Of a stretch of DNA of 64,000 nucleotides, positions 21,465-59,750 are shown in pieces. The stretch is taken from the NCBI RefSeq assembly GCF_030144855.1, contig NW_026781408.1, positions 62,001 through 126,000 on the forward strand, written 5' to 3'. How positions within the stretch are numbered: position 1 is the first letter of the stretch; each line of letters starts with the position of its first letter. The stretch is from Hypanus sabinus. Its lineage: Eukaryota. The position numbers and the translations under genes are program-made. The notes beneath the pieces are model-generated. The model did no database searches and was not told the DNA's origin. It worked only from the letters and a program-made list of their open reading frames with translations.

Positions 21465-22540
21465 CGTCGCCCCTCACACGCTGCCCGACCCACAGCTGCA
21501 TTTCCCACATTATTTCATATTTACACCAGATACGTTTTGCATTTTTCTTATGTATCTCCCCGTCCGATCCTCCACCTCCCCGGGTCGCGGTTACGGGTTC
21601 GATTCCCATCCCGGTCCAACACACAGTTCAGACGCAAAACAGAATTGCCCACACAAAATGCAGGAGGAACACAGCAGGAACGTCAGGAACGAATGGTCCA
21701 CAGGGCTTCTCCCTATAGATGCTGCCTGGCCTGCTGTGTTCCACCAGCATTTTGTGTGTGTTGTTGTTCACATTTCCAGCATCTGCTGACTTCCTCATGT
21801 TTGCTCCAAAACAGAATTGTTCTGGTTTCATTTAAATAAATCTATGTTTATAAACACTAATATCTATTCACTTTCCTCAGGCCTCACTGGACAGGAACAC
21901 TGAAGCATCAAGTGAGAAACAGCAGGATGTGGCCATTCTAACCAGCAACAAGATGGCGGCTGCTGTCCCATCTCAGCCACATGTTTCTGTCCAATCCTCA
22001 TTTCCGCGATCCCTTCGCTCTCCACACAACTGCCGGCCTTTGATTTATGTGAGGATGATCGCTGAGTCTCCACCGCCCTCTGTGGTGGGGATTTACAGAC
22101 ATTTACCACCCTCGGAGTGGAGACATTTCCCCTCATTTCAGTCCCGGACCGTCCATCCCCTTTTTCAGAGACTGGGATCCCTGCTTCAACCGGTAATGAT
22201 GTTGTGCATTTCAGTGTTCACCTCTCAGTCCTCGATTCTCTAAATGAAAGGGTTATATCATTTGATATTTCTCCATATGATGACCCCACCACCTCAGGGA
22301 TCAGTCTGGTGAATCTTTATTGCACTCTCTATAACAAATACTCTCTAACCTCTTTGTAATTAATTTCCATCTTCTGCAGCCCCGTGTTGCCCCAAACACT
22401 CACCTCCCACCCCGTCACTATTTCCACCTTCCCACCTCCCCCCTCGCCTGGATCCACCTCTCAATCCCCAGCTCTTGCCCCATCCCGACCCCTCACCTCT
22501 TTTCTCTGACTATTTCCCGTCCACTCTCAGTCCAGAGGGT
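21465..22540 (+). repeat. Segmental duplicate of 25925-26850
   Basis: Colinear from CGCCCCTCACA(C/T)GCTGCCCGACCC to TTTCCCGTCCACTCTCAGTCCAGAGGG. Confidence 0.9.
21648..21806. mobile_element. Palindromic Penelope-derived element with a 13-bp target-site duplication
   Basis: CAAAACAGAATTG at 21635-21647 and 21807-21819. The paralog at about 26105 has the empty site. Confidence 0.85.
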
Positions 22541-22544
22541 ATGT

Positions 22545-24430
22545 CCTCTTCAAAATTTAAAGTGGATTGTGTTGGCCCTTTGCCAAAGACTAAAGCTGGC
22601 CATCCGTATCTGCTAACTATTATGTGTACTGCATCCAGATTCCCAGAGGCAATACCTCTCAGAAATATTAAAGCTAAAACTGTGGTGAAGGGTCTTACCA
22701 AGTTTTTTACTTTATTTGGTTTGCCTAAAAAAATCCAGTCTGATAAAGGAAGTAATTTTACATCTGGATTATTCCAGCAGGTAGTTTATGAACGGGGAAC
22801 TAAACAAATTACATCATCTGCATACCATCCAGAATCACAAGGGGCTTTAGAAAGATTTCTTTCTGCCCTCAAAGCCATGATTGAGACATATTGTGTTGAA
22901 AATGGAAAAGACTGGAATGAAGGAATACATTTGCTTTTGTTCGCAGTAAGAGAGTCAGTACAGGAAACACTAGGATTTACTCCATTTGAGCTTGTATTTG
23001 GTTGTAGAGTGAGGGGAACTTTGACCTTGTTAAAGGAACAGTGGATTAATGGGGATGTACATGTTAACTTGTTAGACTATGTTTTGAAGATCAAAGATAA
23101 ACTACTCCACACCTGAGGTCTAGCGAGACAAAACTTAGATTTCTCAAAACAAAATGAAGTGTTGGTTTGATAGGAGGGCTTGCGAAAGAAAATACCAGGT
23201 GGGGATAAGGTGCTTACCTTATGTTGAAGAATGTTGACAAATCCACCTCAGGCGAATCTCAATGGACCGTATAAAATAGTCTCTCAAATTAATGATCTGA
23301 ATTGTGTTATTAAAACACCCGACCAATGTAAACTAACACAGGTGGTACACATAAATATGATAAAGCCTTATTTTGACAAGCAGGCACCATCTGTGAGTGT
23401 TGTTGTCAAAACATATGAATCTGGCAAACCTGCGAATGAAACAATTGACTCGTCTGAGAATTTTCACAAGCCAAACGTGGTCCCAGTTAGGCTAATGAAC
23501 TCGGTTGTTCTGGAAAACATTGATAACAAGTTGGCTCATCTGCAGCCAAAGCAACAACAACAGCTGAAGGAATTAATTCTGGAGTTTAAAGATGTATTCC
23601 CCGTTGTTCCCAAGCAAACCACGGTTGCAGCACATGATGTAGATAATGGTCAAGCCAAACCAATTAAACAACACCCATATTGCATGAATGCAGAAAAGTG
23701 TAAATTGCCTGAGCATGGAATTGAATATATACTGGAAAATGGTATTATTAGTCCTTTAGCAGCAGATTGCTCACCCTGTGTTATTGTGCCCAAACCTGAT
23801 GGTAGTGTTAGATTTTGCACTGATTATAGGAAGGTAAATGCAGTAACAAAAACAGATGCCTATCCTATCCTTAGGGTGGATGATTGCATCGATAATGTTG
23901 GAAAAGCTAAATTTCTTACAAAGATTGATCTTTTGAAAGGATATTGATGTGTTCCATTGATGGACAGAGGTAGAGAAATTTCTGCATTTGTGACACCATC
24001 TGGTTTGTGTGAATACAATGTTTTACCTTTTGGAAGGAAAAATAATCCAGGAACATTCCAGAGAATGTTTGATTCTGTAATTCGAGGATTAGAACATACA
24101 GATGCCTATATTGATGACTTAGTCACAGGAGTGCCACTTGGGAAGAGCATATCTCTGCAGTAGAAAAGCTATTTGACAGGCTTTCCCAGTCCAGCCTTAC
24201 AGTTAACTTGGCTAAGAGTGACCGCCATGCCACTGTGACCTGTCTTGGCTATGTTGTAGGTCAAAGCAAGTTGGCTCCTGTTCGGGCAAAAGTCCAGGCA
24301 ATTTCTTCAGTTCCTATTCTGACGCTGAGAAGTTTCTGGAAGAACTTTGCTGCTTTGCTCTTCCTCTGACCAATCTCCTGAAGAAGGGTGAAATGTTTGT
24401 TTGGACAGAGATGCATTTGATCGATTGTTA
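22545..24430 (+). mobile_element. Gmr1-like gypsy internal fragment (integrase core followed by RT)
   Basis: ORF 22475-23116 (DCVGP..SDKGSNF..GALERF) lies upstream of RT ORFs 23231-24163 (RFCTDYRKVN, YIDD). Confidence 0.93.
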
Positions 24431-30945: not shown

Positions 30946-31569
30946 CAATGCACCTCTAAAGTCTGACAGCAGACTGGCGAGTGAATCTTCGATGGAGCAG
31001 AGTCGGAAACCAAAGAGTTGCCAGCCTGAGTCAGGCTTTGCGGCTCCAGAGAGAGAATGGGTCTGGAGTTTACGAGGAAGAGGAGAGGGAAGAAACAGAC
31101 CAACAGGATATGGCTACAAAAGGAAAATCAGAAAAATTTGGAAAAAAGATTGTTAGTTTCTGCAAAATACTGGTGGAAATCAAAAGATTAGGCAGCAATT
31201 GTGGAGAGGAATAAATAAACAACTTTTAGACCGAGCCTCTTCAGCATGCCTAGACTGTGGACTCCACTGCTTAGTTACTACCTGAACTGCAGAGCTCCTC
31301 CAGCATTTTGTGTGTGTGCGCGTCTCTGTATGTCCAGCCACTGCAGAATCTCTTGTGTTTTATATCCACATTTTACATTGGCATTAGATACACGTGGATA
31401 TTGAATACATTGTTTATGTGAGCCGCTTCCTGCGTTAAAAAAGCTTCAGATTTTTTCTATATACCCGAAAAAAAAATGAGATATGGACATTGAATCGGTG
31501 CTTCAAGAACTGTTTAATGGCACCGGTATTACCCAAAAGGCCCTGCCAGAATAATTCTTATCAGGCACT

Positions 31570-31670
31570 GAAGCGCTGATGAACTGCGCAGGCGTCAGGC
31601 TGACGGCGTCCCCGAGTATCACGCATGCGCGCAGCACATGAGGCCTTGAAAATGTCGGTTGCAGGTAAGA
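31570..31670 (+). promoter_or_regulatory. Putative promoter and first exon of ZNF gene A
   Basis: NRF1-like TGCGCAGGCG (31585) and CGCATGCGC (31622), YY1-like AAAATGTCGG, donor CAG|GTAAGA at 31665. Conserved at 53630-53715. Confidence 0.65.
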
Positions 31671-31927
31671 GCGATTCTCCGTGTTTTTATCTTAAACACC
31701 GACTTCGGGATAATTCCTCTGAATTTCGGAGACCGTGACCAGCAACCCCGGGACAGTCCTGCCCTCTTCCCTCTCTCTCAGCCCCACGACCCGTACACGG
31801 GCCCCGGGGAGCTTCCGGCTGATGAGGGAATGGGAACCGATGGATCTCTCAGACAGAGCTGAGCTCCAGCTATCTAAATGCAAGGATTAGGAACTCGGAG
31901 AAAGGGAACAAAATCTTTTACATCACC

Positions 31928-34544
31928 CATCTGTGGACACTCTCTGGAGGTCCAAGATTCGTATGTTACACGACTGCTGGACTAAGTGTGTAAATGTAGG
32001 AGTGGACTATGCTGAAAAATAGATGTGCTAGATTTTCTAAAATTGACTCCTTCTACCTTAGGCCACAACCTTATCTGTCATTCCTTATTTATTTATTTAT
32101 TTATTTATCTATCTATCTATCTAGCTATCTATCTATCCATCTATCTATATTATATATATGGAAAAGCAGTATAACATTAGATGATCCAGCATAAGATGAA
32201 AGTTTAAACCTTAGCCTTTGTTTTAAATCAATACTTAGTCTTTTCTGTGATTAGAAAATCGGAATCTTGGTTAAATTACTGGACATAAAGTATGGTGAGG
32301 TGCATTGCTAGCATTGTAGATTAGCAAATATTCTACTGTGGATTGGACTTCCAGAGCACAGTTATTGGATATCCACAGGACAGTACTGTCAAAGACTAAG
32401 ATGGTACTTTCAAATAGAATTGGAAAGGAAATGAGAGGGAATTTTTGAGTGATGCAGAGCAAGAGAAAAGGATTGGAATTGAGAGGATAGTTCTGGTTGA
32501 TGATCTCCTTTCATGCCAACAATAATTTTATAAAATTGTTCTGTGATTCTGTGTGAAGCTTTCCCTGGTCATTTGCCACCTCTTCTTGTGATTCTGCTCC
32601 TAAATGTGAAGACGTGGAGAAGTGAGTTTAAAATTATGCCATTGAACTGGTTGTAAGAATGGACCACACCTATTGGTCCTCATTTGGTTTATTCGGAGCC
32701 TTGTCAATAGCATGAATAACTGAATAAACATCTCATTAGAATGGGGTAGATTAAATTGAATATATAGGATCTTTAAATTATACCCCTTCCCACTTATTAT
32801 TTTCGCTGGAAAAGAGATGTTGAAATTCTAAGTAATCCTGACTAAAGTGTATTAATGTTTGAAAAAAAAAGCTCAAGGTCAAATAAGTGTGAAACATTTG
32901 TAGAGTATTTTATAGGAAGGGACATTAAAGACATTCATCATTCATGCTGATTTTTCCTCCCAGCACTGCCGCAAATACACAAACCACCCCACCTCCCTTC
33001 AAATCTACTCCATGCTATGCCTGATGAACCAGCCAAGATTAGCAGTTCACCATCTGTGGGAAAAATTGAGTACAAATACCTAATAAGGTTGGGATGTGTA
33101 CATTCGTCTCCCAATTTATGATGTAGGAGCATTGACATTATGCTGCTTTGTGTGTAAAATATACAATCCTCTTTGTTCAATTCTTTATTAGCTCGTGAAC
33201 TTACAAGTTTGCTTCAGGGAGTTAAGCAATTTAATTTTAAACAACAGCATGAATTGACAAATGTTACCAATTTTAAATAGCAAAAAGTTTATAGTATTTT
33301 TTTCCTGGGAAAAAATAGAAGTGGGGAAAAAAAAGACTTTTGGTCTGAAGTTTGAATAGTGTTATCATGTGACTGCATTTTTCAAAAGAAAAGAACAAAG
33401 ATTGTAGTTATCCAAATGCAGAAGGGTTAATCCTACGTTAAACTTGTGAATTAGGATTAAGAGATCCAAGATAATGTTAATTTAATGAAATAATTTAAAT
33501 CCAATTAATGCTTTAAATCTACACTATATGTTCAAGAATGCATTTTAGGTAGCTCAACACCTCAAGCAGGTCAGTCAGGTATCTCTGCTCCCTTTAAACT
33601 CGCACGTTTCTGTTTCCCAGATGCCTTTGAAACTTACTTTGACCTTATTTTCTGAGCTTCTTTTAAACTTGGAGGTTATGTGGAACACATCATTCTGTAA
33701 TGTGATGTCTAAAAACAGTGATTTGGAAGTGAGGTATGATATATTAATATGAGAACATCTAATAATACAGAAAATCTGCTGGTCCGACACCCAAGACCCA
33801 ACCATGGCAGGTTCACTAAGTTTTACTGTGGTTCGTCACATGTTTGGAGGGCTGTCGCCTGAAAGTAATGATCATTAATCACCATCAATGTTACATAGTT
33901 CACACTGAAAATAAAAGCACAAGGGAGAAATCGGCCTCTGCCGCACCTTTTTTTCAGAGTGCTCAGTGGTTCATTTGAAATCAGGTCCAGAATTTTTCTG
34001 CACTTCTGATGGGAAATCTGTTGGATGTGTTTCTGACAAACAAACACCCAAAAAATGTAATGAGTCAATGCACCAAGTGGATTGAACGCCAGCACTTTTG
34101 AACAGTGTGTTTCAGCCTATTCTGTTTCAATCTTTATGAAATGTGAAATAATATGAAAGGTCTAGAACTTGATTGAGGGCTAAAAGATTACGAGAGGCAT
34201 AGACAGGGTGGATAGTCAGTACCCGTTTCCCAGGGCACCAACAGCAAACACCAGAGGGCATATGTATAAAATTAAGGGAGGGAAGTTCAGGGGAGACATC
34301 AGGGGTAAGTTTTTTTTTTACACAGAGGGTTGTGAGTGACTGGAATGACTTGCCAGGGGTGATGGTGGAGGCTAAAACATTAGGGGTATTTAACAGCCTC
34401 TTGGACAGGCACATGGATGAAAGAAAAATGGAGGGTTACGGGGTAGTGTGGGTTTAGTTCTTTTTTTTAAGGTTTATATGGGTTGGCACAACATGGAGGG
34501 CTGAAGGGCCTGTACTGTGCTGTAGTGTTCTATTCTATGGCTCT
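31928..34544 (+). mobile_element. Composite retro-insertion: about 2.2 kb of unique sequence plus a CR1 3' end, with an 18-bp TSD
   Basis: AAAATCTTTTACATCACC at 31910-31927 and 34545-34562. CR1 3' end and tail at about 34170-34544. Absent from the paralog at about 53945. Confidence 0.85.
32085..32160. repeat. (ATTT)n/(ATCT)n microsatellite
   Basis: Read directly from the sequence. Confidence 0.9.
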
Positions 34545-34959
34545 AAAATCTTTTACATCACCAGTTGAGAAAATCATCTTTGATCTACCTCCAATCACAA
34601 AGAGGAAATCTGCAGGTGCTGGAAATCCAAGCTACACACACAAATTGCTGGAGGAATTCAGCATTAGTACTCTTTTCCATAGATGCTGCCTGGCCTGCTG
34701 AGTTCCTCCAGCATTTTGTGTCTGTTGCTTGTTCTACCTCCTCTCGGTCTGCATTTTTCTACCAGTGAGAACACGCTTCCACCAATTCTGTCTGGCTACG
34801 TAATGATATCAAACACCTTTGCCCCGGGCAACAAGTAGCTTTCACATCAGAAATGTGCCAGACTCCAGGGAGATGGACTACTGTCCTTAAAGGCAGTATT
34901 CCTTGGCATTACCATCACTGAGTTCTCCACTGTCAGTCACCTGGGTGAGACTTGAGGGG

Positions 34960-35230
34960 AAATACTTATGTACAATACCGTCTGTATTGTTGCTGTAGAA
35001 TTTTCAAGTGGGAAGAAGTGGAGTGATATTTGGAAATCTGAAATTGAAAGCATCATTTAGCAAGAAAATCACAAATAGGTGGTTTGCAAAAGCTGTGGCG
35101 AGTAAATCCTTCATTAACCTGTTACATAGGTTGTGTGAGAGTGCAGATGAACTCGATCAAGACTCAACCAGAGGAGATTAAAGTTCTTACTGACAGTGAT
35201 TTGCTCGCTGTTGAAATGAAAACCTCTCTA
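34960..35230 (+). mobile_element. Possible hAT transposase N-terminal (TTF-type zinc finger) relic; paralog at 54335-54483
   Basis: Reads CTCLHFGDAKFAGEFASGKK..IWKSDFLKHHLVRKLH in copy B and EEIKVLTDSDLLAVEM in copy A. Confidence 0.4.
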
Positions 35231-35784
35231 TATAAAATTCAGTTTGCACATGTTGTTGTCACTGGGTAAAAATTGTACAGTACAAGGTTTTTGCACACAC
35301 TGGTCATTACAAATTAGAGGGGATATTGGTGGGAAGGCGGGGAGACCTCCAGTGTCCCTGACGTCCTCACGTATATCCAGCTGCACTTTAAGGAGTTGGA
35401 GCTGGAAATGGATGAATTCCGCATCATCCAAGCGTCAGAGGGTGTGATAGGTATGACGAGCAGAGAGGTGAGTTGTACCCAGGGTGCAGGACACAGGAAA
35501 CTGGGTGAGAGTCAGGAAGGAGAATGTTAAATAGCCATCGCCGAGTACTCTTGTTGCTATCCCACACAACAACAGGTGGACACTTTAGAAACTGTTGGGG
35601 GGAATTACCTGGCAGAGGAAAGTCAAAGGGGTGATAGGGGATTTGTTAGTTAGTGGAACAGAACTAGAAAGGGATGAGTATCCTAGTGGCAAGGCTTGCT
35701 GGTGCTCCCCTGTGGGGTGGGTGGTTAAACTAAAGTTGCAGGGAGGATCGGAGCCAGAATGACAGAACAGAGAGTGGAGAGGGT

Positions 35785-36540
35785 GAATTGAATCGAATTG
35801 ACTTTATTACTTACATTCTTCATACATGAGTTGTAGAAATCTTTATGTTATGTCTCTGTCTAAATGTGCAATGTTAAATTTTTTAATAGTTTATAATAAA
35901 TAGTATGTACAACAGGACAGTCAGGATAAATAAAAGTACAATTGTATCAGCATGAATTAATCAATCAGAGGGCCTGGTGGAAGAAGCTGTCCCTGGGCCT
36001 GTTGATCCGGGCTTTCAGGCTGTGCTACCGTTTCCCAGATGGTAGCAGCTGGAACAGTTTGTGGTTGGGGTGGCTCTGGTCCCCAATGATCCTTTTTACA
36101 CAGTGGTCCTTTTTACACACCTGTTTTTGTCAATGTGCTGAATAGTGAGAAGTTCACATCTACATATGCGCTGGGCTGTCCGCACCACTCTCTGCAGGGT
36201 CCTGCAACTGAGTGAAGTACAGCACCCATACCAGGCAGTGATGCAGCCAGTCAGGATGCTCTCAATTGTGCCCCTGTGGAAAGTTGTTAGTATTTGGGGC
36301 CCCGTCCCACACTTCCTGAACCGCCTGCGGTGAAAGTGGTGCTGTTGTGCCTTTTTCACCACACAGCCAGTATGTACAGACCAGGTGAGATCCTCGGTGT
36401 TGTGTGTGCCAGGGAACTTAAAGCTGTTCACCCTCTCAACCGCAGATCCTGGGTCAGCCTGTCTCCATTTCTCCTGTAGTCTGCAGCCAGCTCCTTTGTT
36501 TCAGTGACATTGAGGGCAAGGTTCATTTTTGACACCAAAC
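35785..36540 (-). mobile_element. Rex1-like LINE 3' fragment
   Basis: FKFPGTHNTEDLTWS..KKAQQ..TIESILTGCITAWYG, with a (ATTCA)n tail. Confidence 0.85.
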
Positions 36541-36544
36541 AGAT

Positions 36545-39500
36545 GTCATTCAGACCTCAGGACATGAAATTATGATATTGTAGCCATTACTTGGACTTGC
36601 TTGCGCCCAACAGTCTGAGGGATTTCAAGGAACAAATCTGTAGAGAGATTGCGGACTATGCCAAGAAACAAAGGTTGATAAAGTGAGTGATTTTAACTTT
36701 CCATTTATTGACTGGAATCCTAGGCTGTAAAAAGACTAGATGGGGTAGAGCTTATCAAATCTACCTTAATCAGTATGTAAAATTCCTGATGTAGAAGTGT
36801 GCAATAAGCTATTGGGAAGTGATCTAGGGCGAGTGACAGAAATTAGTGTATGGGAACACTTTGTATCTACTGATCATGAGATTCCAAGTAAATACAGAAA
36901 AGCAGAGGCCTGGACCTCTCTTGAGATTCTAAATTGGAGAAAGGCCAATTTTTATGATATTTACAAGGATTTGACAAGTGTGGATTGGGACAGGATGTTT
37001 TTTAGCAAAGGAGAACTTGGTAAGTGGGAGTTCTTCAGAAGTGAAATTTTAAGGGTGTAGAGTTTGTATGTATCTGACAAAATAAAAGTTGAATGGTAAC
37101 TAGTGCAGGGAATCTTGGTTTTCAAGAGATATTGAGGCCCTGGATATCTCGTTCCTCTAAATGCCGTGGACTGTTGGGTGCAACCAAAACTCATTAATGA
37201 CAACCATTTAATAATTCCACTCCTGAACTCATCTGACTTTCCTTTAGTTGTCTTCTTTTGGATTCTAAAAGCTTCCTAATGGTCTTTTGCTCTTTTGTTT
37301 GCCCTCTCCTCTGCTTTTATGTTGGTTTTGGTTTCTCATTTAATCCACGGTTGTGCCCTGCTGTCATTCCAATGCTTCCACGTCTTTGGGATGTATCGAT
37401 TACTCAGCTCTCGAATTGCTCCCAGAAACTCCAGCCATTGCTGCTCCATTGTCACTCCTACCTTTTCCCTTCCAAACAAGTTTGGCCAGCTTCTCTGTCA
37501 CAGAAACATGGAGAAGTTCAGTACAGAAACAAGCTATTTGGCCCATCTAGTCAATGCCAAAAACATTTAATCTCTCTAATGCAACTACCTGCACCGGGAT
37601 CATCACCCTCCGTACCCCTACCATCCAGGTACCTGTCAAACTTCTCTTAATGGTGAAATCGAGCTCATATTCACCACTAGTGCTGACATCTCATTCTGCA
37701 CTCTCACGACCATTTCAGCAAAGAACTTTTCCAAATGTTCCCGTTAAATTTTCACCTTCCCCACTTACCCATGACCTCTGGTTGTCGTCCCACCCAACCT
37801 CAGTGGAAAAAGCTGCTTGCATTTACCCTATCTATACCCTCATAATTTTGTTTACTTCTAACAAATCCTCAAAGCAATGTAAAATTTCTTTGTTTATGTT
37901 TGGAGCCTTTTTTAGGTGTATAAGATGATGAGGGGCATTGAGTGTGTGGAGAGCCAGAGGATTTTTTCCCAGCGTTAACATGGCTAACAGGAGGGGGCAT
38001 AGTTTTAAGGTGCTTGGAAATATATGCGGAGGGGATGTCAGGGGTAGGTTTTTTACACAGTGAGTGTTGGATGTGTCGAATGCACTGCCAGCAGCGGTTG
38101 TCGAGGCGGATACAACAGGGACTTTTCACACTCTCTTAGATAGTTACATGGAGCTCAGAAACATAGAGGACTATGCGCTAGGGAAACTCCAGGCAGCTTC
38201 TAGAGTAAGTTACATAGTCGGCACAGCACTGTGGGCCAAAGGGTCTGTAATGTGCTATAGATTTCTATCATTCTATGAAATTCAAGGGAAATCTCCAAAC
38301 CCACGGAGTGGTGACTAGTAGTGAATATTGGGAAAGTTACTGGAACGTATGACCAGGAACCGGAAATATAAGTATTTGGATAGATGTGGAATGATTAAGA
38401 ATAGGCAACATGGCTTTGCGCAGGATAGGTCATGTCTAACCAATCTTATAGAGTCTCTCGAGGAAGTTATCAGGATAGTGGATGAAGACAAGGCAGTGGA
38501 TGTTGTCTACATGGATGTTAGCAAGGCACTTGACAAAGTCTCATATGGGAGGTTGGTCAAGAAGGTTCAGTCACTCAGCATTCTAGATGAGATAGTAAAT
38601 TGGATGAGACACTGTCTTTGGCAGAAGCCAGAGTGTGGTAGCAGATGGTTGCCTCTCTGACTGGAGGCCTGTGACTAGTGGTTGCCACAGGGATCAGTGC
38701 TAGATCTGTTGTGGTTTGTCATCTATATCAGTAATCTGGATGATAGTGTGGTTAACTGGATTAGCAGATTTATGACCACCAAGACTGGTGGTGTAGTGGA
38801 CAGCGAGGAAGACTATCATGGCTTGCAGTGCAATCTGGACCCCCTGGGAAAATGGTTTGAGAAATGGAAAATGGAATTTAATTCAGACCAGTGTGAGCTG
38901 TTGCACTTTGGTTTGACCTACCAAGGGAGGTCTTTCACAGTGACTGGTCGGGCACGGAGGAGTGTTGTAGAAGAAAGGGACCTGGGAATACAAGTCCTTA
39001 ATTCACTGAAAGTGGTATCACAGTTAGATAGTGACGGAAAGAAAGATTTTAGCCCATTGGCTTTCGTGAACCAAATCCTGACAATAGATGGATATTATGT
39101 TGACTTGTAAAAGAGGCCTAATTTGGAGTATTGTGTGATGTTTTGGTCACCTACTGACAGGAAAGATTTAAAAGAGATTCAAAGATTTCAGATAAAATTC
39201 ACAAGGCTGTTGTCAAGTTTGGAGGACTTGGGTTATAAGGAAAGATTGAACAGGTCAGGACTTTATTCTTTGGAATGTAGAAGATTGAGGTGAGATTTGA
39301 TTGTGGTAGAGGGGCATAGATAGTGTAAATGCAAGCTGGCTTTCTCCACTGAGATTGGGTAGGACTTCAACCAGTGGCCAGGGGTTAAGGGTGAAAGGTG
39401 AAATGTTAAGGGGAACATGAGGGGAAGCTTCTGCACACAGATGGTCATCTAGGTTTGGAATGAGCAGCCAGCACAAGTGGTGCACGCGAGCTCGATTTCA

Positions 39501-39615
39501 ACATTTAGGAAGTTCGTGTAGGTACCTGGATTGTAGGAGTGTGGGAGGGGTAATTTAAATAGTTCAGCACAAGACTAGATGGCCCAAAGGACCTGTTTCT
39601 GTGTTGTACTTTTCT
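36545..39615. mobile_element. Nested CR1 fragments, mostly plus strand; RT and 3' end at 38320-39615
   Basis: LNWRKANF, QHGFAQDRSCLTNL, PQGSVL, WKMEFNSDQC. Minus-strand pieces at 37140-37870. Confidence 0.85.
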
Positions 39616-40516
39616 ACAAGAACTTGAAATATTACAAAAATTCACTCTAACCCCTTTTACCAGCTGTGCGGACCAACCAGTCATCTCAGCAGGAATTTTT
39701 TTATATGGTGTTAAAGCTGTAGCACTTTAAGTTAATAATACATAAAAGAATTCCCAGATGCACATCCACAAAGACAATTTGCGTGAGACTGTTTCAGTTA
39801 CTGTGGGGCCAGGCACCCATGTAGCTCAGCAGGAACAGGGAATAATACCAATGGAGAGAGTCAAACTGAGCCAGTTCACAGATTGGAGACGGCAGAAATG
39901 CCCCATTCTTATAGAGACAGGAAGAGCTTCAGGGAATTGATGGTCATTCCAGATACCAGCACTCTGCCCAGTCAGAAGATGATTTCTCTGTCCAACTTGG
40001 GTTGAACCTCACTGTAACCGTGTGATACCAAGTCAAACCATGGCAACTCAAGTAATCTCATCTGAAATGTTGTCCTAAACCCATTGATGGATTTTGTAAA
40101 TGTTTTCACAGGTTAAAAACGAGAAGGAATTTGTCGCCGGGGATCTCAAACAGAAAACGCCAGTTTTGCTGTCTCTGTCTGGATATTTAAGAAGTGGAGC
40201 GAGGGATTCAATCGACTATCCTTCCTGCTCAGACTGTGGAGAGGGATTCAATTGATCATTTGACCAAATAGCAAGCCAGTCATCTTACACAGGAGAAAGG
40301 CTGTTCACCTGCTCAGACAGTGGGAATAGATTCACTCAGTTATCACAATTGAAGGTACATCAGCAAGTTCACACTGGGCAAGGCCATTCATCTGTTCTGT
40401 GTGTGAGAAAGGATTCAGTTGGACCTGTGGACACACCAGTCAGTTCACACCACACCTGGTAGAGGCTGGTGATCTGCTGAATTTCTGGGAAAGGATTCAC
40501 TCAGTCATTTGACCTT

Positions 40517-42391
40517 ATGGCTCACCAGCGAGTTCACACTAGGGAGAAGCCATTCACCTGTTCAGTCTGTGGGAAGGGATTCACTCAGTCATCCAACCTA
40601 CGGAGTCCCCAGCGAGTTCACACTGGGGAGAGGCCGTTCACCTGTTCAGAATGTGAGAAGAGATTCACTCAGTCATCCAACCTACGGAGTCCCCAGCGAG
40701 TTCACACTGGAGAGAGGCGCTTCACCTGCTCAGTCTGTGGGAAGAGATTCACTCGGTCATCCAACCTACTGGTACATCAGCGAGTTCACACTGGGGAGAA
40801 GCCATTCACCTGCTCAGAATGTGGGAAAGGATTCAGTGAGTTATCCAACCTACTGGTACATCAGCGAGTTCACTCTGGGGAGAAGCCATTCACCTGCTCA
40901 GTCTGTGCGAAGGGATTCACTCAGTCATCCAACCTACAGAGTCATCAGCGAGTTCACACTGGGGAGAAGCCATTCACCTGCTCAGAATGTGGGAAAGGAT
41001 TCAGTGAGTTATCCAACCTACTGGTACATCAGCGAGTTCACTCTGGGGAGAAGCCATTCACCTGCTCAGTCTGTGCGAAGGGATTCACTCGGTCATCCAG
41101 CCTACAGAGTCATCAGCGAGTTCACACTGGGGAGAAGCCATTCACCTGCTCAGAATGTGGGAAAGGATTCAGTGCTTTATCCAGCCAACTGAGACATCAG
41201 CGAGTTCACACTGGGGAGAAGCCATTCACCTGCTCAGAATGTGGGAAAGGATTCAGTGAGTTATCCAGCCTACTGAGACATCAGCGAGTTCACACTGGGG
41301 AGAAGCCGTTCACCTGCTCAGAATGTGGGAAAGGATTCAGTGAGTTATCCAGCCTACTGAGACATCAGCGAGTTCACACTGGGCAGAAACCGTTCACCTG
41401 TTCAGAATGCGGGAAGAGATTCACTCAGTCATCCCAACTACAGAGTCATCTGCCAGTTCACACTGGGGAGAGGCCATTCACCTGCTCAGACTGTGGAAAA
41501 GGATTCACTCTGATATCCCGCCTACAGAGACATCAGCGAGTTCACACGGGGGAGAAGCCATTCAACTGCTCAGTCTGTGGGAAGGGATTCACCCAGTCAT
41601 CCCACCTACGGAGTCACCAGCGTGTTCACACTGGGGAGAAGCCATTCACCTGCTCAGTCTGTGGGAAGAGATTCACTGTGTCATCCCACCTACAGAGTCA
41701 TCAGCGAATTCACACTGGGGTGAAGCCGTTCACCTGCTCAGAATGTGGGAAGGGATTCACTCAGTCATCCAACCTACGGAGTCATCAGCGAGTTCACACT
41801 GGAGAGAGGCCATTCATCTGCTCAGAATGTGGGAAGAGATTCACTCAGTCATCCGCCCTACAAAGACACCAGCGAGCTCACACTGGGGAGAAGCCGTTCA
41901 CCTGCTCAGAATGTGGGAAGGGATTCACTCAGTCATCCTACCTACTGAGACATGAGAGTGTTCACACCGGTGAAAAGCCGTTCAATTGCACAGAATGTGG
42001 GAAACGGTTCACTCTGTCATCCCACCTTCTGGAACACCAGCGAGTTCACACTGGGGAGATGCCGTTCCCCTGCTCAGAATGTGGGAAGAGATTCACTCGC
42101 TCATCCGACCTGCAGAATCATCAGCGAGTTCACACTGGAGAGAAGCCATTCCCCTGCTCAGAATGTGGGAAGAGGTTCAGTCACTCACGCTCCCTGCAGA
42201 GACACCAGTCAGTTCACACTGGGGAGAAGCCGTTCATCTGCTTAGTCTGTGGGAAGAGATTCACTGAGTCATCCAGATTACTGGAACATCAGCGAGTTCA
42301 CACTGGGGAGAAGCCGTTCATCTGCTTAGTCTGTGGGAAGAGATTCAATAACTCATCCAGATTGCTGGAACATCAGCGAGCTCACACTTGA
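40517..42391 (+). CDS. Tandem C2H2 zinc-finger protein A, 624 aa, 22 finger units (fingers 1-2 have His to Pro)
   Basis: CxxC-x12-HxxxH units with TGEKP linkers. Exon acceptor TTTTCACAG at 40111. The ORF ends at GGA>TGA in a linker, and two decayed fingers follow up to 42549. Confidence 0.92.
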   Translation: MAHQRVHTREKPFTCSVCGKGFTQSSNLRSPQRVHTGERPFTCSECEKRFTQSSNLRSPQRVHTGERRFTCSVCGKRFTRSSNLLVHQRVHTGEKPFTCSECGKGFSELSNLLVHQRVHSGEKPFTCSVCAKGFTQSSNLQSHQRVHTGEKPFTCSECGKGFSELSNLLVHQRVHSGEKPFTCSVCAKGFTRSSSLQSHQRVHTGEKPFTCSECGKGFSALSSQLRHQRVHTGEKPFTCSECGKGFSELSSLLRHQRVHTGEKPFTCSECGKGFSELSSLLRHQRVHTGQKPFTCSECGKRFTQSSQLQSHLPVHTGERPFTCSDCGKGFTLISRLQRHQRVHTGEKPFNCSVCGKGFTQSSHLRSHQRVHTGEKPFTCSVCGKRFTVSSHLQSHQRIHTGVKPFTCSECGKGFTQSSNLRSHQRVHTGERPFICSECGKRFTQSSALQRHQRAHTGEKPFTCSECGKGFTQSSYLLRHESVHTGEKPFNCTECGKRFTLSSHLLEHQRVHTGEMPFPCSECGKRFTRSSDLQNHQRVHTGEKPFPCSECGKRFSHSRSLQRHQSVHTGEKPFICLVCGKRFTESSRLLEHQRVHTGEKPFICLVCGKRFNNSSRLLEHQRAHT

Positions 42392-43313: not shown

Positions 43314-43547
43314 CCACGAGGAAATCTGCAGATGCTTGGAAGTCAAACACACACAAAATGCTGGTGGAGCACAGCAGGCCAGGGAGCATCTATAAGGAGA
43401 AGCACTGTCAACGTTTCAGGCCGAGACCCTTTGTCAGGCAGTCTCAGGCAGTCCTGATGAAGGGTCTCGGCCTGAAACGTCGACTATGCTTCTCCTTATA
43501 GATGCTGCCTGGCCTGCTGTGTTCCACCAGTATTTTGTGTGTGTTGT
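43314..43547. mobile_element. Palindromic Penelope-derived element inside the LTR, 14-bp TSD
   Basis: Approximately 100-bp inverted arms. TCC(T/A)GGTGTAGTCT at 43300-43313 and 43548-43561. Empty site in LTR B at about 63321. Confidence 0.88.
43450..43485 (+). ncRNA. Minimal type-I hammerhead ribozyme motif
   Basis: AGUC-CUGAUGA-AGG(GUCUCGG)CCU-GAA-ACGU-C-GACU: stem I, intact core, stem II, palindromic stem III and a GUC cleavage triplet. Confidence 0.75.
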
Positions 43548-43625: not shown

Positions 43626-46600
43626 ATGAACAGCTATGGGGGCGTAGTCATTAATTATCGATTTCATTGGGGAAGTCCCTTTTGATATATTTGTGTGTAG
43701 AAAATCAGCAGCGGATGCTGATTATTGTTTGGAAGCAGGAACCTCTGAGGCATTAGAGGATGCCAGATGGATTGAGTTGTTGAGTCTTGCTAGAAGGTTA
43801 AAACTTGCTATGTTGAAATTGACAATGAGGAGGGAACAGATGCAGAGGGTAATAGCTGAACATTATGTATCTGAGGGTGTGTTTAAAGTGGAGGAGTTGG
43901 ACGTGTTTCCTGGAAGTAAACCTAGTGAGCTTGAGCTCCAGGACAAGTTAGAAAAATTAAAGATGGAGGCTGCGGAAAGGCAGAGGCAATTTGAGGCAAG
44001 AGAGGCAGAAAATCAGAGAGGAGGCAGAAAAACAGAGAGGAAGCAGAAAGACAGAGGCTATTCGAGCTGGAAAAGATACAGTGGTTGCAGCAAAGGGGTC
44101 TAGCGTTAGACTCTGGTGATGAGTTTGAGGCCAGTCAGGAAATTAAATTGGTACCTCCATTTGATCAGAAAGAGGTTGATAAATACTTACAGCATTTTGA
44201 GAAGGTTGCTTAGAATTTAAAGTGGCCAAAAGAGGGTTGGTTCTCTTACAAAGGGGGAGGCTCAGCAAGCCTATTCTGCTTTGACAGTTGATGAAGCAGC
44301 TGATTGTGACATAGTGAAACAGGCTGTGCTCAAAGCTTACGAGTTGGTCCCAGAATCATACAGGCAAAAGTTTAGAAATTTGTGGAAATCTGTGAACCGG
44401 ACATATGTAATTTGCTTATGAGAAGTCTGTGTGTTTTGATCGCTGGTGCACATATATGATGATATATATGATGATGATAAATATATGATGATTTTAATAG
44501 CTTGAAAGAGTTAGTTTTAATTGAAGAATTCAAAAAGTGTGTCCCTGATGACATAAAAACATATTTAGATGAAAAGGATGCTGCCACTTTGCAGGAGTCT
44601 GCTAGATTAGCAGATGAGTTTGCTTTAACTCATAAGGTTAAGTTTACCCAGAATAAGAGCTTCCAAAAGAGTAGCAGGGGTCACCAGGGTAAACGCGAAA
44701 TTATAGCTGGAACTAGTGACAAGTGTAAGGATGAAGGGAAGCAGTTGAAAGAGAAATATTCTGGTCTTGCTTGTTACTATTGTAAGAAAGCTGGTCATAT
44801 GATGGCTAATTGTTCTGTCCTGAAGAAGAAAAAGGAAAAGGTGTCAGTCCCGAATACCTGTGATCAGTCTGTTGAAGCACCTATCAACCCACAGGGTTCT
44901 GAACATTCTGTTGAGGCTCAGTTATGGACTGAGAGTTCTGACCGAATTAAGAAGGCTTTTGATCATTTTATGTCAAATGGGTTTGTATTAGTAAAGGAAG
45001 GGTGAACCCAAGAACCAGTGAAAATTCTTCAAGTTACTGGCGATTCTCAGTCACTTATATTAGCCAGCGTTCTAAAGTTTGGTGATGAGACTTAACACTG
45101 GTGAGGTAAATCTTATTGAAGGCACTGGGGGTGGCATGGTTTCTGTGCCGTTGTACAAGGTAACTTTACTGTCAGGGTTGGTTTTGGGACCTGTTAAAAT
45201 CGGATTATGCTCCATTTTACCATTGGAAGATGTTGGTTTGCTGTTAGGGAATGACCTAAAATTGTTCCTGCAGTGCTATTGACAACTAAGACAACCGCTG
45301 ACGACCCACAGATGGATTTAAACATTTATCCTTCCTGCGCAGGAACTCGAAGTATGGCTAAGAAGTCTGCCGATGCAGACGGTTCTGTGCAGCATGATTC
45401 TGATACCCATGATAGCCAAAATCGGGATTCAGGTTATGATGTCAGGGAATTTCTGCCTTCATTGTTTCAACAGGATTCAGGTCGTAAGTCTGATGAGAAA
45501 GATGTATCCCTGTGTAGGAAGGAGTTTATAGCAGAACAGAACCGAGACCCTGAGATTGAAGCTTTAAAAGAAACAACTTTCTCAGATGATGAGATTAAGA
45601 AAGTGCCAGCAGGGTATTATCTCAAGGATGGAGTGTCAATGAGGAAGTGGAGGCCACCTGCTATACCAGCGAGTGAGGAATGGGCAATTGTTCACCAAGT
45701 TGTAGTTCCTAAAGTTATATGGCTGAAATTTTAACTTTGGCCTGCAGTATGCCATCAGGTCGACATTTTGGAGTGAATAAAACTGTAAACAGTTATGAAA
45801 TAATTCTACTGGCCTAATTTGAGGAAAGATGTTGTGACCTTTTGCAGAATCTGTCACACTTGTCAAGTTGTGGGTAAACCGAATCAGGTCACGCTAGTGG
45901 CCTCACTCTGCCCTATACCTGCATTCGGTGAACCCTTTTTAAAATTTATAGTGAGGGGTCCTTTGTCCTTGTTAAAGGAACAGTGGATTGATGGGGATGT
46001 ACATCTTAACTTGTTAGACATTGTGTAGAAGTTCAAGAATAAACTACAAGTCTGTAGTCCAGTGAGACAAAACTTAAAGATTTCTCAAAACAAAATGAAG
46101 TGTTGGTTTGATAAGTTGGCTTTGGAAAGAAAATACCAGGTTGGGGATAAAGTGCTTGCTTTATCTCCAATATTGATGAATCCACTTCAGGCTAAGTTCA
46201 ATAGACCGCATGAAATAGTCTCTCAAATTAATGATCTGAATAATGCTATTAAAACACCTGACCAACGTAAACTAACACAGGTGGTGCACATAAATATGAT
46301 AAAGGCTTATTTTGACAAGCAGGCTCCATCTGTGAGTGTTGTTGTCAAATCATATGAATCTGGCAACCCTGAGAATGAAACAATTGACTTGTCTGAGACT
46401 TTTCACAAGCCAAACATGGTCCCAGATAGGCTAATGAACTCAGTTGTTCCAGAAAACATTGTTAACAAGTCGGCTCATCTGCAGCCAAGGCAACAACAAC
46501 AGCTGAAGGAAGTAAGCCTGATGTTTAAAGATTTATTTCCCGATGTTCCCAAGCAAACCACGGTCGCAGTACATGATGTAGATATTGGTCAAGCCAAACC

Positions 46601-47430
46601 GATTAAACAACACCCATATTGTATGAACGTTGAAAAATGTTAAATTGGCTGAGCAAGGAATTGAATATATGCTGAAAATGGTATTATGAGTCCTTCAGCA
46701 TCAGATTGGAGCTCACCCTGCGTTATTGTGCCTTATCCTGATGGTGGTGTTAGATATTGCACTGATTATGGGAAGGTAAATTCAGTAACAAACAGATTCC
46801 TCTCCTATCCCTAGGGAGGATGATTGCATCATTAAGGTTGGAAAAGCTAAATTTCTTACAAAGATTGTTCTGTTGAAAGAGTATTGGTGTGTTTCATTGA
46901 CGGACAGAGGTAGAGAAATTTCTGCATTTGTGACACCTTCTGGGTTCTGTGAATACAATGTTTTCTCTTTTGGAAGGAAAAATGGTCCAGGATCATTCCA
47001 GAGAATGATTGATTCTCTAATTCGAGGGTTAGAACATACAGATGCCTATATTGATGACTTAGCCACAGGGAGTGGCACTTGGGAAAAGCATATCACTGCA
47101 GTCGAAAAGCCGTTTGACAGGCTTTCCCAGGACAACCTTACAGTTAGCTAAGAGTGAATTTGGCCATGCCACTGTGACCTGTCTTGGCTATGTTGTTGGT
47201 CAAAGCAAGTTGGCTCCTGTTCGGGCAAAAGTCCAGACAATTTCTCAAGTTCCTATTCTGACTGCTGAGAAGGCTCTTAGAAGGTTTCTGGGAATGGATG
47301 GATATTATCGTAAGTTCTGTAAGAACTTTGCTGCTATCGCTCTTCCTCTGACTAATCTCCTGAAGAAGCGTGAAAAGTATGTTTGGACTGAACCTTGTCG
47401 GGAGGCATTTGATCGATTGAAAGGTATTAT
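43626..47430 (+). mobile_element. Decayed Gmr1-like internal region: gag (SCAN-like, CCHC), PR, IN (core deleted), RT; 3' truncated
   Basis: ORF fragments 43693-47434: LKAYELVPESYRQKFR, CYYCKKAGHMMANC, CRICHTC, YIDD. Many stops. Confidence 0.93.
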
Positions 47431-48810
47431 TTGAGGTTAGGCCAATCAATGTAGTGCTGTCAGCCAATTTCATTAGCAGGTTGGAGCTGTGGGTGGCAAC
47501 ACAAGTCATGGGTGCACAGAGAGTAAAGGAGAGGGCCAAAGAGACAACCCTGTGGGTTATGTGTGCTGAGGGTCAGAGAGACAGAGGAGATGGAGCCCAC
47601 TCTTACCACCTGCCGGCGATCTGACAGGAAGTCCAGGATCCAGCTACACAAGGCAGGGTGAAGGCCGAGGTCTCTGAGCTCCATGTCGATACTTCACGCC
47701 TTCGTCTGGACTCTCCCTACACTTCCCCTCCCTTGGAAAAGCAGGCCATGCACTCAAAGAACCTCATAACCTGGACATTCTCGCTGCAAACCCGCTCCCC
47801 CATCGGGGAAGAGATACAAAAGCCTTAAATTGTGTAACACCAAGCTGAAGGATGGCTTCCTGTCTGCAGTTATAAGCCAAATGAATGATAAAATGGACTC
47901 GACCTCACAATGTAACTCGACGTGACCCTGCACCATATGTCTATCTGCACTGCACTTTCTCTGCAGCAATAATGCTTTGTTACAGTTATTGTTTTATCGT
48001 ATATCAGCTCGATGTACCGTTGTAATGTATCGATCTGTGTGGATGGTACGTCAGGGAAGATTTGAACTGTCGTTCAGTACATGATGATAATAAACAAATT
48101 CCCCATTTTAATTGTGTGCAAATATTAGACAGACTGAGCTTCTGCTCTGGAACCACAGAAGGAAACTGAACAGTTCTCTTTCTGAGGAACGCAAGTAAAT
48201 AGAAAAGGCTTTAATCTCTCATTACGATCTGCTGTAAGTGGGATCAGATGACTGGTGGTGGGTCTCCCATATTAATATCAGAATCAGGTTTAATAGCACC
48301 GGCATATGTCATGAAATACGTTCAGAAGTAGAACCTAATTTTTAACCATAGTTTTTAACAATTGTGATTTAATATAAGAATATAAATATCACATTGTTAA
48401 ATTATATAAATAGTACAAAATGAAAAAAAAGATGTAATAAACTATTTTAACTGTGCCGACTGTTTGACTGACTGGGTTGTTGCTTTGGAAGTAGTGGAGT
48501 GAAGCTTAACTGAACTGCACACATTTATGAGAAGCTCAGATAATTATAAAAAGCTAAATTCTCACATAAGTGGGTCAGACACCCAGAAACATCGGCAGCA
48601 CTTCAGCAGGTAAAAACAGTGGAATGAAACATGGTGAAAATATTGCCGAAAAAAAACCATATTGTCCACCACAACGAGAGGACGTGACAGATCCGGATCT
48701 CACCGCCTTGTCTGAACGGGGAAAGATGAAGCTACACGTATAGGTAGAGCAGTGACCCGCAGATGCTGCAGATCTGCAGAGAAACGTGAACAGGAAACGG
48801 GATCACGTGG
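45950..48810 (+). repeat. Segmental duplicate of 23008-25885
   Basis: Same gypsy RT, same gypsy/LINE junction, and same downstream unique sequence. Confidence 0.9.
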
Positions 48811-49190
48811 CCGCTTTGGTCTCTCACCCCCAGACAGATGTCCGTTTACCCACTACTCTGTGGAAAGACGCAAACGCCGCTCACATCTCCTCTCACCTTA
48901 AATGTATTAGACATTTCAACCCCCAGGAAAAATATATCGTCTGTCCACTCTGTCTATTCCTCTCGTAATCTTATAAACGTCCATCCAGTCTCACCCCAGC
49001 CTGCGCCGCTCTGGAGAAAACAACATAAGTTTGTCCAGCCTCTCGTTATAGCTCATGTCCTCTAATCCAGGCAGTGTCCTGGTAAACCTCTTCCCCGCCC
49101 TGTCCAAAGCCCCAACATCCTTCCGAGAATGGGGGCGACCAGAACTGTATGAAACACTCCAGATGTGGGCTAACTAGTTTTATAAAATTG

Positions 49191-50220
49191 TGTTACAAAC
49201 TGTAGCGTTTTAGAAACAAACCAGTAGCAATAGAGTTCACACTGGAGTCTGGTTTTGATGTTAAAACCATTATCTTTAGTAGTATCGACTGATAATATAG
49301 TAACTTAACGAAATAAAGGAAAGTTAACAGTGTAATGTGTATATATGTGCAAGTATAACTCCCAGACTATCGAGCCTGAGGGAACAAAGCTCAGAGTCTT
49401 GAGATGGTAAAGTATGAAAGTTCAGTAATACACGGAATAAGTTATGGGAGAAAGATATTTGTAATCCTGGGTGAAACGTAGAGAAACGGCCGTTACTAAA
49501 ATTACCGCCGTCGATGTTCTTATCCGTTGAATCCGTCCACATACGAGTTATCAGCGAAAGTGACCTGTCACAGGAATACCGTCTTCCAGGGGTTACCAAA
49601 CAACATACCCAGGCAAGGGTTAACAGAATATATTCCACAATCCACTCCTATGGATTATAGGAAGTGACAGCCACACACGTTCGTTGTGGTTCCGTGTAGC
49701 GATGATCAACCCACTCTTGTGGGCATAGGAGACTTTCAACCCTCAGCTGCGACTAANNNNNNNNNNNNNNNNNNNNNNNNNNNNNNNNNNNNNNNNNNNN
49801 NNNNNNNNNNNNNNNNNNNNNNNNNNNNNNNNNNNNNNNNNNNNNNNNNNNNNNNNNNNNNNNNNNNNNNNNNNNNNNNNNNNNNNNNNNNNNNNNNNNN
49901 NNNNNNNNNNNNNNNNNNNNNNNNNNNNNNNNNNNNNNNNNNNNNNNNNNNNNNNNNNNNNNNNNNNNNNNNNNNNNNNNNNNNNNNNNNNNNNNNNNNN
50001 NNNNNNNNNNNNNNNNNNNNNNNNNNNNNNNNNNNNNNNNNNNNNNNNNNNNNNNNNNNNNNNNNNNNNNNNNNNNNNNNNNNNNNNNNNNNNNNNNNNN
50101 NNNNNNNNNNNNNNNNNNNNNNNNNNNAGCGCTGTCAGCCTGTGACTGACGTCATAGTCCCGCCTCCTCACGCCGGCGCTCTTAAAGAAACAGTCACTGT
50201 ACGACCGCAGGCTCGTAACA
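49191..50220 (-). mobile_element. Solo LTR related to 30270-30945, inserted in a minus-strand CR1 fragment and spanning the assembly gap
   Basis: TGTTAC..CGTAACA termini and colinearity with the other solo LTR. CR1 sequence continues on both sides. Confidence 0.8.
49757..50127. other. Assembly gap (371 N)
   Basis: Run of n. Confidence 1.
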
Positions 50221-51587
50221 GCCGCAACACAACTTCCCGACTTTTGAACTCAATGCTTCAACTAATAAAGACAACCATGACATTTGCCTTCTTAATCACC
50301 CGATCAATCTGTGCAGTCTCTTTCAGGGAGCGATGAACTTGGAGTCTAAGATCCCTGTGATCATCAACACTGTTCAGGGTTTTGCATTCAACAGTGTACT
50401 GTCTCATACATTCGACCTACCGAGCTGCCAAGATGATCATCACTAATCAAATCTCACTGAGATTTCTCAGGTCCTGTTGAATTTATTGTAAAGTGCACAA
50501 GTACGGGAAGGTACAGGTACAGAGAGACACTGACTTGTAGCAGCATCACAGGCAAGTACATTCAGATAACACACGGAACACAAGTTATACGAGGCTCTGT
50601 CAGTAACAATCTATAAATATGTTTTCTGTCATCAACAATATATAAAATACATTGTGTCATGATCACTATTAAAATGTGCATTTTGTGTCAATAACAGACT
50701 TGGAAATGTTGAATGTGCTCCCTGTCTGCATTCCTCCTGTAATCCACAACCAGCTCCTTTGTTTTTATCACAACGAGGCAGAGGTTGTTTTCTTGACACC
50801 CCTGTGTCCGGGTGATGACTTCTTCTCTGTAGGCTGCCTCGTCATTATTTGGGATTCGGTCGATCAATGTAGTGCCGTCAGCAAATGTAATTAGCAGATT
50901 GGGACCCGCCACTGCAGCCCCACAGTCCACTATGTACTGATTGCAAAGCTACGAAATTGCATGTGAATAGCCTCCCCTCCACCAACTCCACTCTTTCTGC
51001 CTCACCAGCAGACTGGGACATCTCACATCTCGTTGCCTCCTCCAGGACAATAAACTGTGAACAACTGTGGTCAGGGACTGATCTCTGGGGTACTCCAAAC
51101 GCTACCTCCTTCCAGTCTGAAAACGACCCACTCATCCAGACACACACTACCGGCAGTTTATCATCTCCAACGAAAAAGCCTAATCACCTACTCCTGAGGG
51201 TCAATACCATTGCTGACTCTGAGTTTACCACCGTCAAATGCCGGGAGGGTCATAATAATCAGAAAGTCTCTAGTCACAGCCGTGTAAATAAAATGTGATC
51301 TCAGTGGGTGTGTGGCGCATGCTCAGAATGCGAATGAGACAGACAAACTGAGCCAAGTCACAGACTGATGAAGGGGAGGAAGGATCCATTTTGATACAGA
51401 GAGGGAAGCAGAGAGTTTGATGTTGTGGTTGATTCCGGAACTGTGGCCAGTTAAAAGATGAAGTCTTGTCCCCCCAAATTGTTTTGAGATGTGACAGTGT
51501 TTTTCTCTGAAGGCACCATGGAAACTAAATAATCTGAGTGGAAATGTTGTCCTTCACCCACTGACGTGGTTTGTAAACTTTTAACAG

Positions 51588-52040
51588 TTTAGAAAAGACA
51601 AAGGATTTGTGTATGGGAATCACAAACACAACAGCACGATAGTTCCGCTGTATCTGTCAGTTCACCAGCGCTTGAATGCCGCCGATCCTTGAATGTGGAG
51701 GCGGAGATGGCGGAGAAGACAACGCTCCCTCTTGCTGCAAGGAGAGCCCGAACATGTGTCCATGCCCGTTATCTGATTGGATACATCGCCCTGACGTTAT
51801 AGCAGTACTGGCTCTCATTTTGGAAGGGATTCTGTCGGCCATCGCAGATACACCAACAGCTTCGCTCTGGGAAGCGGCCGTTCACCTGCTCCATGTGTGT
51901 GAAGAGACTCATTCAGTGAACCCACCTTGTGATGCTCCGGTGTGTTTACAATAAATAGAGGCCACAGTGAGCAAAGAGTTTTACTCAATCATCCCAGCTG
52001 CTGCAACACCAACAACTTCACATCAGGGAGGAAGTTCAAA
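51588..52040 (+). pseudogene. Degenerate C2H2 zinc-finger exon remnant
   Basis: Acceptor context homologous to 40111 and 59568. RPFTCSMCVKRL with stops. Confidence 0.75.
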
Positions 52041-53624: not shown

Positions 53625-53717
53625 CGATCAAATGCGCAGGCGTCAGGATCGCAGCCGTCTCCGATAAATACGCATGCGCGCAGTATACAAAATGTCGGGA
53701 GGATCGGAAAGGTAAGG
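53625..53717 (+). promoter_or_regulatory. Putative promoter and first exon of ZNF gene B
   Basis: TGCGCAGGCG 53633, CGCATGCGC 53671, AAAATGTCGG, donor AAG|GTAAGG at 53712. Confidence 0.65.
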
Positions 53718-54484
53718 GTTTTTCTGACTCTAATTGGGTGACAATTGCTGTGAGAACCGGAGGCTGTCGCCCGCAAACTCAGCACAGGCCAGATTTTTTC
53801 TTCTCTCTCAGCCCCACGATCCGTACACGGGCCCCGGGGAGCTTCCGGCTAATCAGGGAACGGGAGCAGATAGATCTCACAGACGGAGCTGAGCTCCAGC
53901 TATCTGAATGCAAGGATTAGGAACTCGGAAAAAGAGAACAAAATCTTTCTATCAGCTGTTGAGAAAATCACTTTTGTTCTATCTCCTACCGCAGCAAGTG
54001 AAAATCTGCAGAAGCTGGAACTCTTTTAATGCTGGAACAGCATTAGGACTCTTTTCCATAGATTCAGCCCGGCCTGCTGAGTTCCTCCAGCATTTTGTGT
54101 GTGTTGCTTGTTCTACCTCCTCTTGTTCTGGACTTTTCTACACGTGAGGACATGTTTTGACCCGTTCTGTCTTGGTACATAATGATATCAAGCACCTTTG
54201 TCCTGGGCATCAAGCAGCCTTCAAATCACAAATATGCCAGACTCTAGTGAGTCAAACTGCTGCCCTTCCCTTCATATTCATTGGCATTGCCATAACCGAG
54301 TTCATCACCGTCCGTCACTTGAGGGAGGGTTCAGTGGAAATATTTATGTAAAATACAGAAACTGGTTGTACCTGTTTGCATTTTGGTGATGCAAAATTTG
54401 CTGGAGAATTTGCAAGTGGGAAGAAGGGGAGTGATATTTGGAAGTCTGACTTTTTAAAGCATCATTTAGTAAGAAAATTGCACA

Positions 54485-59660: not shown

Positions 59661-59750
59661 GGATTCAATCGACCATCCTTCCTGCTCAGACTGTGGGGAG
59701 GGATTCACTCGATCATCCTTCCTGCTCAGACTGTGGGGAGGGATTCACTC
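59661..59750 (+). repeat. 40-bp tandem duplication in the ZNF B leader
   Basis: GGATTCA(A/C)TCGA(C/T)CATCCTTCCTGCTCAGACTGTGGGGAG twice. Single copy in gene A. Confidence 0.9.

Follow-up and report, generated by a model that had tools for sequence, protein, structure and literature searches.

A young CR1-tailed retro-insertion with apparently non-coding cargo tells apart two diverged ZNF loci of Hypanus sabinus

Introduction

In LINE-1 5′ and 3′ transduction, flanking genomic DNA is co-transcribed with the LINE and inserted with it between target-site duplications (TSDs). Cartilaginous fish genomes are rich in CR1, a LINE of a type for which retrocopying that depends on poly(A) is thought to be limited. 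Reverse transcriptases of this "stringent" CR1 type select a template by its 3′ tail (PMC3747384), so that trans copying is open to any transcript bearing such a tail. The structure recognised in CR1 consists of a 3′ hairpin and an ATTCTRTG microsatellite (PMC8665684), and CR1-tailed SINEs move through recognition of their tail by the CR1 reverse transcriptase (PMC5729268).

Here we describe a block of DNA in a ZNF locus of Hypanus sabinus that can be set beside several of these systems. The window, by which we mean the whole 64-kb stretch of DNA that was analysed, contains this locus (A) and a diverged paralog (B). Like a LINE-1 transduction, the block is non-LINE DNA inserted together with LINE sequence between TSDs, and an empty site reveals the event; unlike LINE-1 transduction, its LINE part is only a dead CR1 tail of ~385 bp, and the cargo is six times as long as that part. 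Because nothing of the LINE is present except this tail, the proteins would have had to act in trans and to select the RNA by tail recognition, not by poly(A). The TSD-flanked arrangement of TguSINE1 and PittSINE (PMC5729268), in which non-LINE sequence lies 5′ of a CR1 tail and is mobilised by the CR1 reverse transcriptase, is also similar to that of the block, which differs from these elements in having neither a tRNA nor any other pol III head and in the length of its cargo (2.2 kb versus ~100 bp). Finally, the block shares with U6/L1 (PMC6789731) and with the tripartite pseudogene of Magnaporthe (PMC2104539) the presence of two unrelated RNA-derived parts in one orientation within a single TSD-flanked insertion; unlike in these chimeras, its 5′ part cannot be recognised as any cellular RNA, nor does it stop where an RNA would have its 3′ end. 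All in all, the block is a clean insertion, driven by a CR1 tail after the duplication of the locus and carrying apparently non-coding cargo. Events of this kind are known, and this one seems to be a common side effect of active LINEs.

Results and Discussion

The block is flanked by an exact target-site duplication and is absent from the paralogous locus

In a self-comparison of the window, locus A (23005-43313) and locus B (45947-63334) emerged as a diverged duplication of ~20 kb, with 73-87% identity. In locus A, the 18-mer AAAATCTTTTACATCACC occurs at 31910 and again at 34545, these being its only two exact matches in the 64-kb window, and 2,617 bp lie between the two copies (Table 1). In locus B, the two flanks meet at one diverged version of the site, AAAATCTTTC-TATCAGC, and the block is missing. 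The left flank (31709-31918) aligned with 53740-53948 and the right flank (34545-34799) with 53940-54178 of B, and the offset between A and B fell by 2,647 bp across the insertion site. The empty site is continuous sequence, the run of N in locus B being located apart from it, at 49757-50127. The initial annotation had described a 2.6-kb block bounded by an exact 18-bp direct repeat and absent from paralog B, and it was correct in each of these respects. Hence one TSD pair surrounds both the cargo and the LINE part, and the corresponding empty site exists, which is the arrangement expected of a transduced flank. The block is a retro-insertion: the TSD, a LINE 3′ end that abuts it and the empty site together indicate target-primed reverse transcription of one CR1-tailed RNA.

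Table 1. Features of the insertion in locus A and of the empty site in locus B (positions in the window)
Feature	Position	Strand	Basis or remark
Promoter/first-exon-like segment upstream of the insertion	31560..31664	+	Conserved between A and B
TSD, 5′ copy, 18 bp	31910..31927	+	Exact 18-mer; aligns to a single site in paralog B
Cargo, ~2.2 kb, AT-rich, non-CR1, apparently non-coding	31928..34159	+	3′ boundary good to ~+/-15 bp
(TATC)n microsatellite in the cargo	32086..32148	+	TRF: period 4, 15.8 copies; preceded by a short (TTTA)n run
5′-truncated CR1-type LINE 3′ fragment (remnant of the ORF2 C-terminus and 3′ UTR), ~385 bp	~34160..34544	+	Homology to copies in the window
Predicted CR1 3′ UTR hairpin	34484..34522	+	RNAalifold consensus
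CR1-type octamer ATTCTATG (ATTCTRTG)	34532..34539	+	Followed by GCTCT and then by the TSD
TSD, 3′ copy, 18 bp	34545..34562	+	Exact 18-mer; same alignment evidence as the 5′ copy
Empty site in paralog B	~53940..53957	+	Both flanks of the block align here, 73-83% identity

The block ends in a CR1-type 3′ tail

The segment adjoining the 3′ TSD copy was found to be homologous to three CR1-type tails of the window, located at 52820-52446 (−), 30084-29734 (−) and 37914-38293 (+), with 66-67% identity over 350-380 bp (E 1e-19 to 1e-21). The first two of these are one ancestral CR1 copy that was duplicated along with A and B. The segment in the block covers only the last ~100 codons of ORF2, and the ORF remnants that it contains (34208-34339 and 34332-34457) are in different frames, so that the coding remnant of CR1 is broken. 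Pfam returned no match for this ORF2 remnant, no CR1 C-terminus was carried by proteins P0102 and P0061, and no full-length CR1 partner was present within the window.

An RNAalifold consensus over four copies predicted a hairpin of 14 pairs close to the 3′ end, which is present in the predictions for all four; no compensatory changes were detected among these copies, and the stability of the hairpin in the single-sequence fold was unexceptional (z = 1.2). The octamer ATTCTATG is exact, lies 5 bp before the TSD as one full unit only, and also closes the CR1 copy at 38270. The block therefore carries both elements expected of a CR1 3′ end, an octamer of the ATTCTRTG type and a hairpin kept in the four copies without compensatory changes, and its description as ending in a CR1 3′ tail holds for the last ~385 bp, which match the three other tails.

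The independent CR1-type fragments of the window (34160, 37914 and 52830) begin within ~15-25 bp of one position, ~380 bp from the 3′ end. This common start suggests either that truncation favours this point or that such fragments form a short unit of their own. Since the CR1 part of the block begins near the usual 5′ end of independent copies, it is what would be expected of a pre-existing, standard 5′-truncated copy.

The cargo is AT-rich and apparently non-coding

The GC content of the cargo is 0.35, compared to 0.43-0.48 in the flanks. No second copy of 31928-34164 was detected in the 64-kb window, even when sensitive blastn with 7-base words was used. ARAGORN predicted 0 tRNA genes in the block and Rfam matched no RNA inside it; accordingly, a pol III-type head (tRNA, 5S or 7SL), as SINEs possess, was not found by either program. 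An A-run, an AATAAA signal and an Rfam RNA were all absent from the junction between cargo and CR1 (34130-34165), and the 5′ part does not stop there as a discrete RNA would at its 3′ terminus, which would be expected after a template switch.

Searches of Pfam, NCBIfam and PDB revealed no credible homology for the cargo, the only Pfam matches being sub-threshold ones to RasGEF and DUF7725. Ten ATG-initiated ORFs of the block had no match in the protein collection, relatives of a 90-aa ORF were not found, and one metagenome pattern scan, in which a donor was sought, was blank. The cargo may originate from intron or intergenic DNA, and nothing indicates that it contains real exons. On the minus strand of 32151-34164, five stretches distributed over different frames remain open for 75-97 codons; Markov shuffles yielded ~1.2 stretches of at least 75 codons (P 0.002-0.008), and counts in control DNA were similar to that of the cargo. 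The best look-alikes of these stretches, the C-terminus of MED27 (32624-32761, E 0.8) and DUF7725 (E 0.013), were at the level of other chance matches, and a coding minus strand was discarded as a candidate.

The template was possibly a read-through transcript of a dead CR1 copy with its 5′ flank

As to how the block arose, we propose the following order of events. A duplication of ~20 kb would first have given rise to the ZNF loci A and B; locus A would then have received a DNA copy of a single RNA through target-primed reverse transcription. The last ~385 nt of this RNA would have been the CR1-type 3′ tail, with its predicted hairpin and ATTCTRTG octamer, and the first ~2.2 kb an unrelated non-coding sequence. 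The CR1 machinery would have copied the tail-bearing RNA in trans, by recognising its 3′ tail. The source RNA, in turn, may have been produced by read-through across an ordinary dead, 5′-truncated CR1 copy together with its upstream DNA, so that cargo and tail would already have been co-linear at a source locus from which a cargo of single-copy origin was taken. We favour this 5′-flank transduction as the origin of the template, although at somewhat less than an even chance. The coincidence between the start of the CR1 part and the starts of independent copies supports a pre-existing truncated copy as the source, and the absence of an A-run and of AATAAA at the junction argues against a second, polyadenylated template. 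Two considerations count against 5′-flank transduction. One is that the hairpin has no covariation support. The other is that CR1 copies are usually severely 5′-truncated, which makes a full copy, 2.6 kb in length, of a chance transcript an uncommon product.

A second explanation, only somewhat less probable, is that the block belongs to a non-autonomous retroposon present in many copies, a long element whose body is non-coding and which depends on a LINE through a borrowed CR1 tail. The defined ends with their TSD and the functional-looking CR1 tail would suit such an element, and a perfect TSD fits a family that was recently active. Against it, the 64-kb window held no second copy, a result that rules out only families with copies in the tens of thousands, and both a pol III head and an Rfam match were absent.

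It is improbable, though conceivable, that the two parts were joined by a template switch, in which the CR1 reverse transcriptase, after ~385 nt of CR1 RNA, would have changed to an unrelated RNA and continued on it for 2.2 kb. TSD-flanked chimeras driven by CR1 have been documented (PittSINE, PMC5729268), and U6/L1 (PMC6789731) and fungal chimeras (PMC2104539) are also known. However, the end of the cargo at the junction shows no poly(A) run, no canonical poly(A) signal and no 3′ end of a known small RNA, and the point at which the enzyme would have switched falls where truncated CR1 copies usually begin.

We consider it unlikely that dead, truncated CR1 tails of the stingray genome repeatedly carry kilobases of upstream host DNA to new sites, or else that the block is a previously undescribed 2.6-kb non-coding element dependent on CR1. 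If dead tails did so repeatedly, this would be the CR1 counterpart of L1 transduction, and recurrent trans-mobilisation driven by CR1 tails would provide a route for shuffling non-coding DNA, such as promoters and splice sites, in cartilaginous fishes.

The exon-like segments of the cargo are within chance expectation

In the initial annotation, the cargo had been interpreted as an intron-containing fragment of another gene, that is, as unspliced pre-mRNA of a coding gene whose genuine exons could be spliced into ZNF A. Three exon-like segments (32255-32294, 32964-33087 and 33549-33733) are indeed present as described, preceded by AG, followed by GT and open in the frames given for them. They do not, however, exceed what chance provides. 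The longest open stretch on the plus strand of the cargo comprises 67 codons, compared to a mean maximum of 77 in Markov shuffles, 86% of which reach 61 open codons. Open segments of 100-400 nt bounded by AG and GT numbered 98 on the plus strand versus 81 +/- 48 in shuffles and 241 on the minus strand; pieces of the window that served as controls contained 161-743. Therefore, segments of this kind are equally common in shuffled sequence and commoner in control DNA, and those of the cargo are no better than chance.

Homology searches with the encoded peptides, which had been recommended as a check, were carried out in Pfam, NCBIfam, PDB and HMMER and yielded no credible homologue. HMMER analysis of 33549-33749 against 1.84 billion representative proteins gave as its sole match P0001, a bacterial SLH/Ig-repeat surface protein (nine weak repeats summed, 28% identity), which we regard as spurious. 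ESM Atlas assigned the same region an ABC1/UbiB-like identity with a score of 0.91 and 158 shared features, below the guide value of 170; this lead was supported by none of Pfam, PDB, NCBIfam and phmmer against the whole library. The RasGEF match, at 32916-33080, was also dismissed as chance: it was sub-threshold in Pfam (14 bits, E 0.044), lay in a frame different from that of the proposed exon, corresponded to no RasGEF structure in PDB and had an Atlas score of 0.61.

The reading frames across the proposed splice junctions led to a similar result. The phases of the first two segments had been said to fit, and joining these segments indeed leaves an open frame; in contrast, the join of the second to the third (33087 to 33549) runs into a stop. 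Splicing of the putative first exon (31652-31664) to 32255 encounters a stop after 10 codons, and splicing of 33733 to 40112 encounters one after 26 codons, so that the suggested donation of N-terminal exons to ZNF A through the junctions 31664>32255 and 33733>40112 finds no support. In sum, AG/GT-bounded open segments, the in-frame join of the first two and the Atlas match below its guide value speak for captured exons, whereas their chance-level frequency, the want of any homologue and the stops at three joins leave neither a captured coding fragment nor a new N-terminus supported, and we judge this interpretation to be very improbable. The retrocopy of a gene with its exons would be recognised by protein homology or a coding signal, and the putative exons displayed neither. 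Likewise, there is no evidence that the insertion changes the ZNF product.

A plausible placement of the insertion in the first intron of ZNF A, in sense orientation

The block and the ZNF ORF run in one direction, and the block is located downstream of a CpG-rich, promoter-like segment that is common to A (31560-31664) and B (53600-53730) and comprises GCGCAGGCGTCAGG, ACGCATGCGCGCAG, ATGTCGG and an AG/GTAAG donor. The putative first exons defined by these signals end in phase 1 after 13 nt in A and 22 nt in B, and on this basis 31560-31664 would contain exon 1 of ZNF A. A CpG-rich segment shared by both loci, with an ATG and a GTAAG donor upstream of the block, makes placement in the first intron plausible; of the earlier statement that the insertion is a sense one in this intron, the orientation and the downstream position are observed directly, and the intron is a plausible context.

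Both intact ZNF ORFs begin in the middle of a finger array (40112-40517 and 59980-60016), with degenerate fingers containing three stops upstream. In ZNF A, the three stops in the ZNF frame fall between 40112 and the ATG at 40517, and consequently an in-frame connection from the ATG of the putative exon 1 to the array by way of 40112 is not possible. An exact copy of the 624-aa ORF of ZNF A (40517-42391) was present on two contigs of GCA_030144855.1, of 332 kb and 1.32 Mb, which means that a second identical copy or a haplotig of the locus exists. A homology search for an annotated gene model of ZNF A returned only foreign ZNFs.

The insertion is younger than the A/B duplication

Non-coding DNA of A and B beside the insertion site is 73-74% identical (~26% diverged). 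The two TSD copies, in contrast, are identical at 18 of 18 positions. Were the insertion as old as the duplication, the probability of this identity would be ~0.74^18 = 0.004. By this measure of divergence, the insertion clearly postdates the duplication, and the claim of a single retro-insertion into locus A is upheld in the form of a target-primed, post-duplication event that brought in non-CR1 DNA along with a CR1 3′ tail. That the block is older than the duplication, and that recombination between the 18-bp repeats removed it from B, is scarcely credible, because, although a repeat-mediated deletion would also leave a clean single-copy site as in B, the TSD copies have remained identical amid ~26% A/B divergence (P ~0.004). 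The block is thus one clean, datable insertion and a useful marker for telling apart the two ZNF paralogs.

Other repeats in the window

Remnants of LTR-retrotransposon genes were located at 429-3510 (−), 22475-23947 (+) and 44502-46643 (+); they comprise RVT_1, RNase H, integrase and a SCAN-like gag with a zinc knuckle. Immediately 3′ of the insertion, at 34602-34734, lies a short repeat able to form a hairpin. It has a sub-threshold Rfam match to MIR6024 (31 bits versus a gathering score of 72), and ~10 more copies occur in the window, including those at 21715-21769, 43318-43546, 6174-6398 and 7294-7525.
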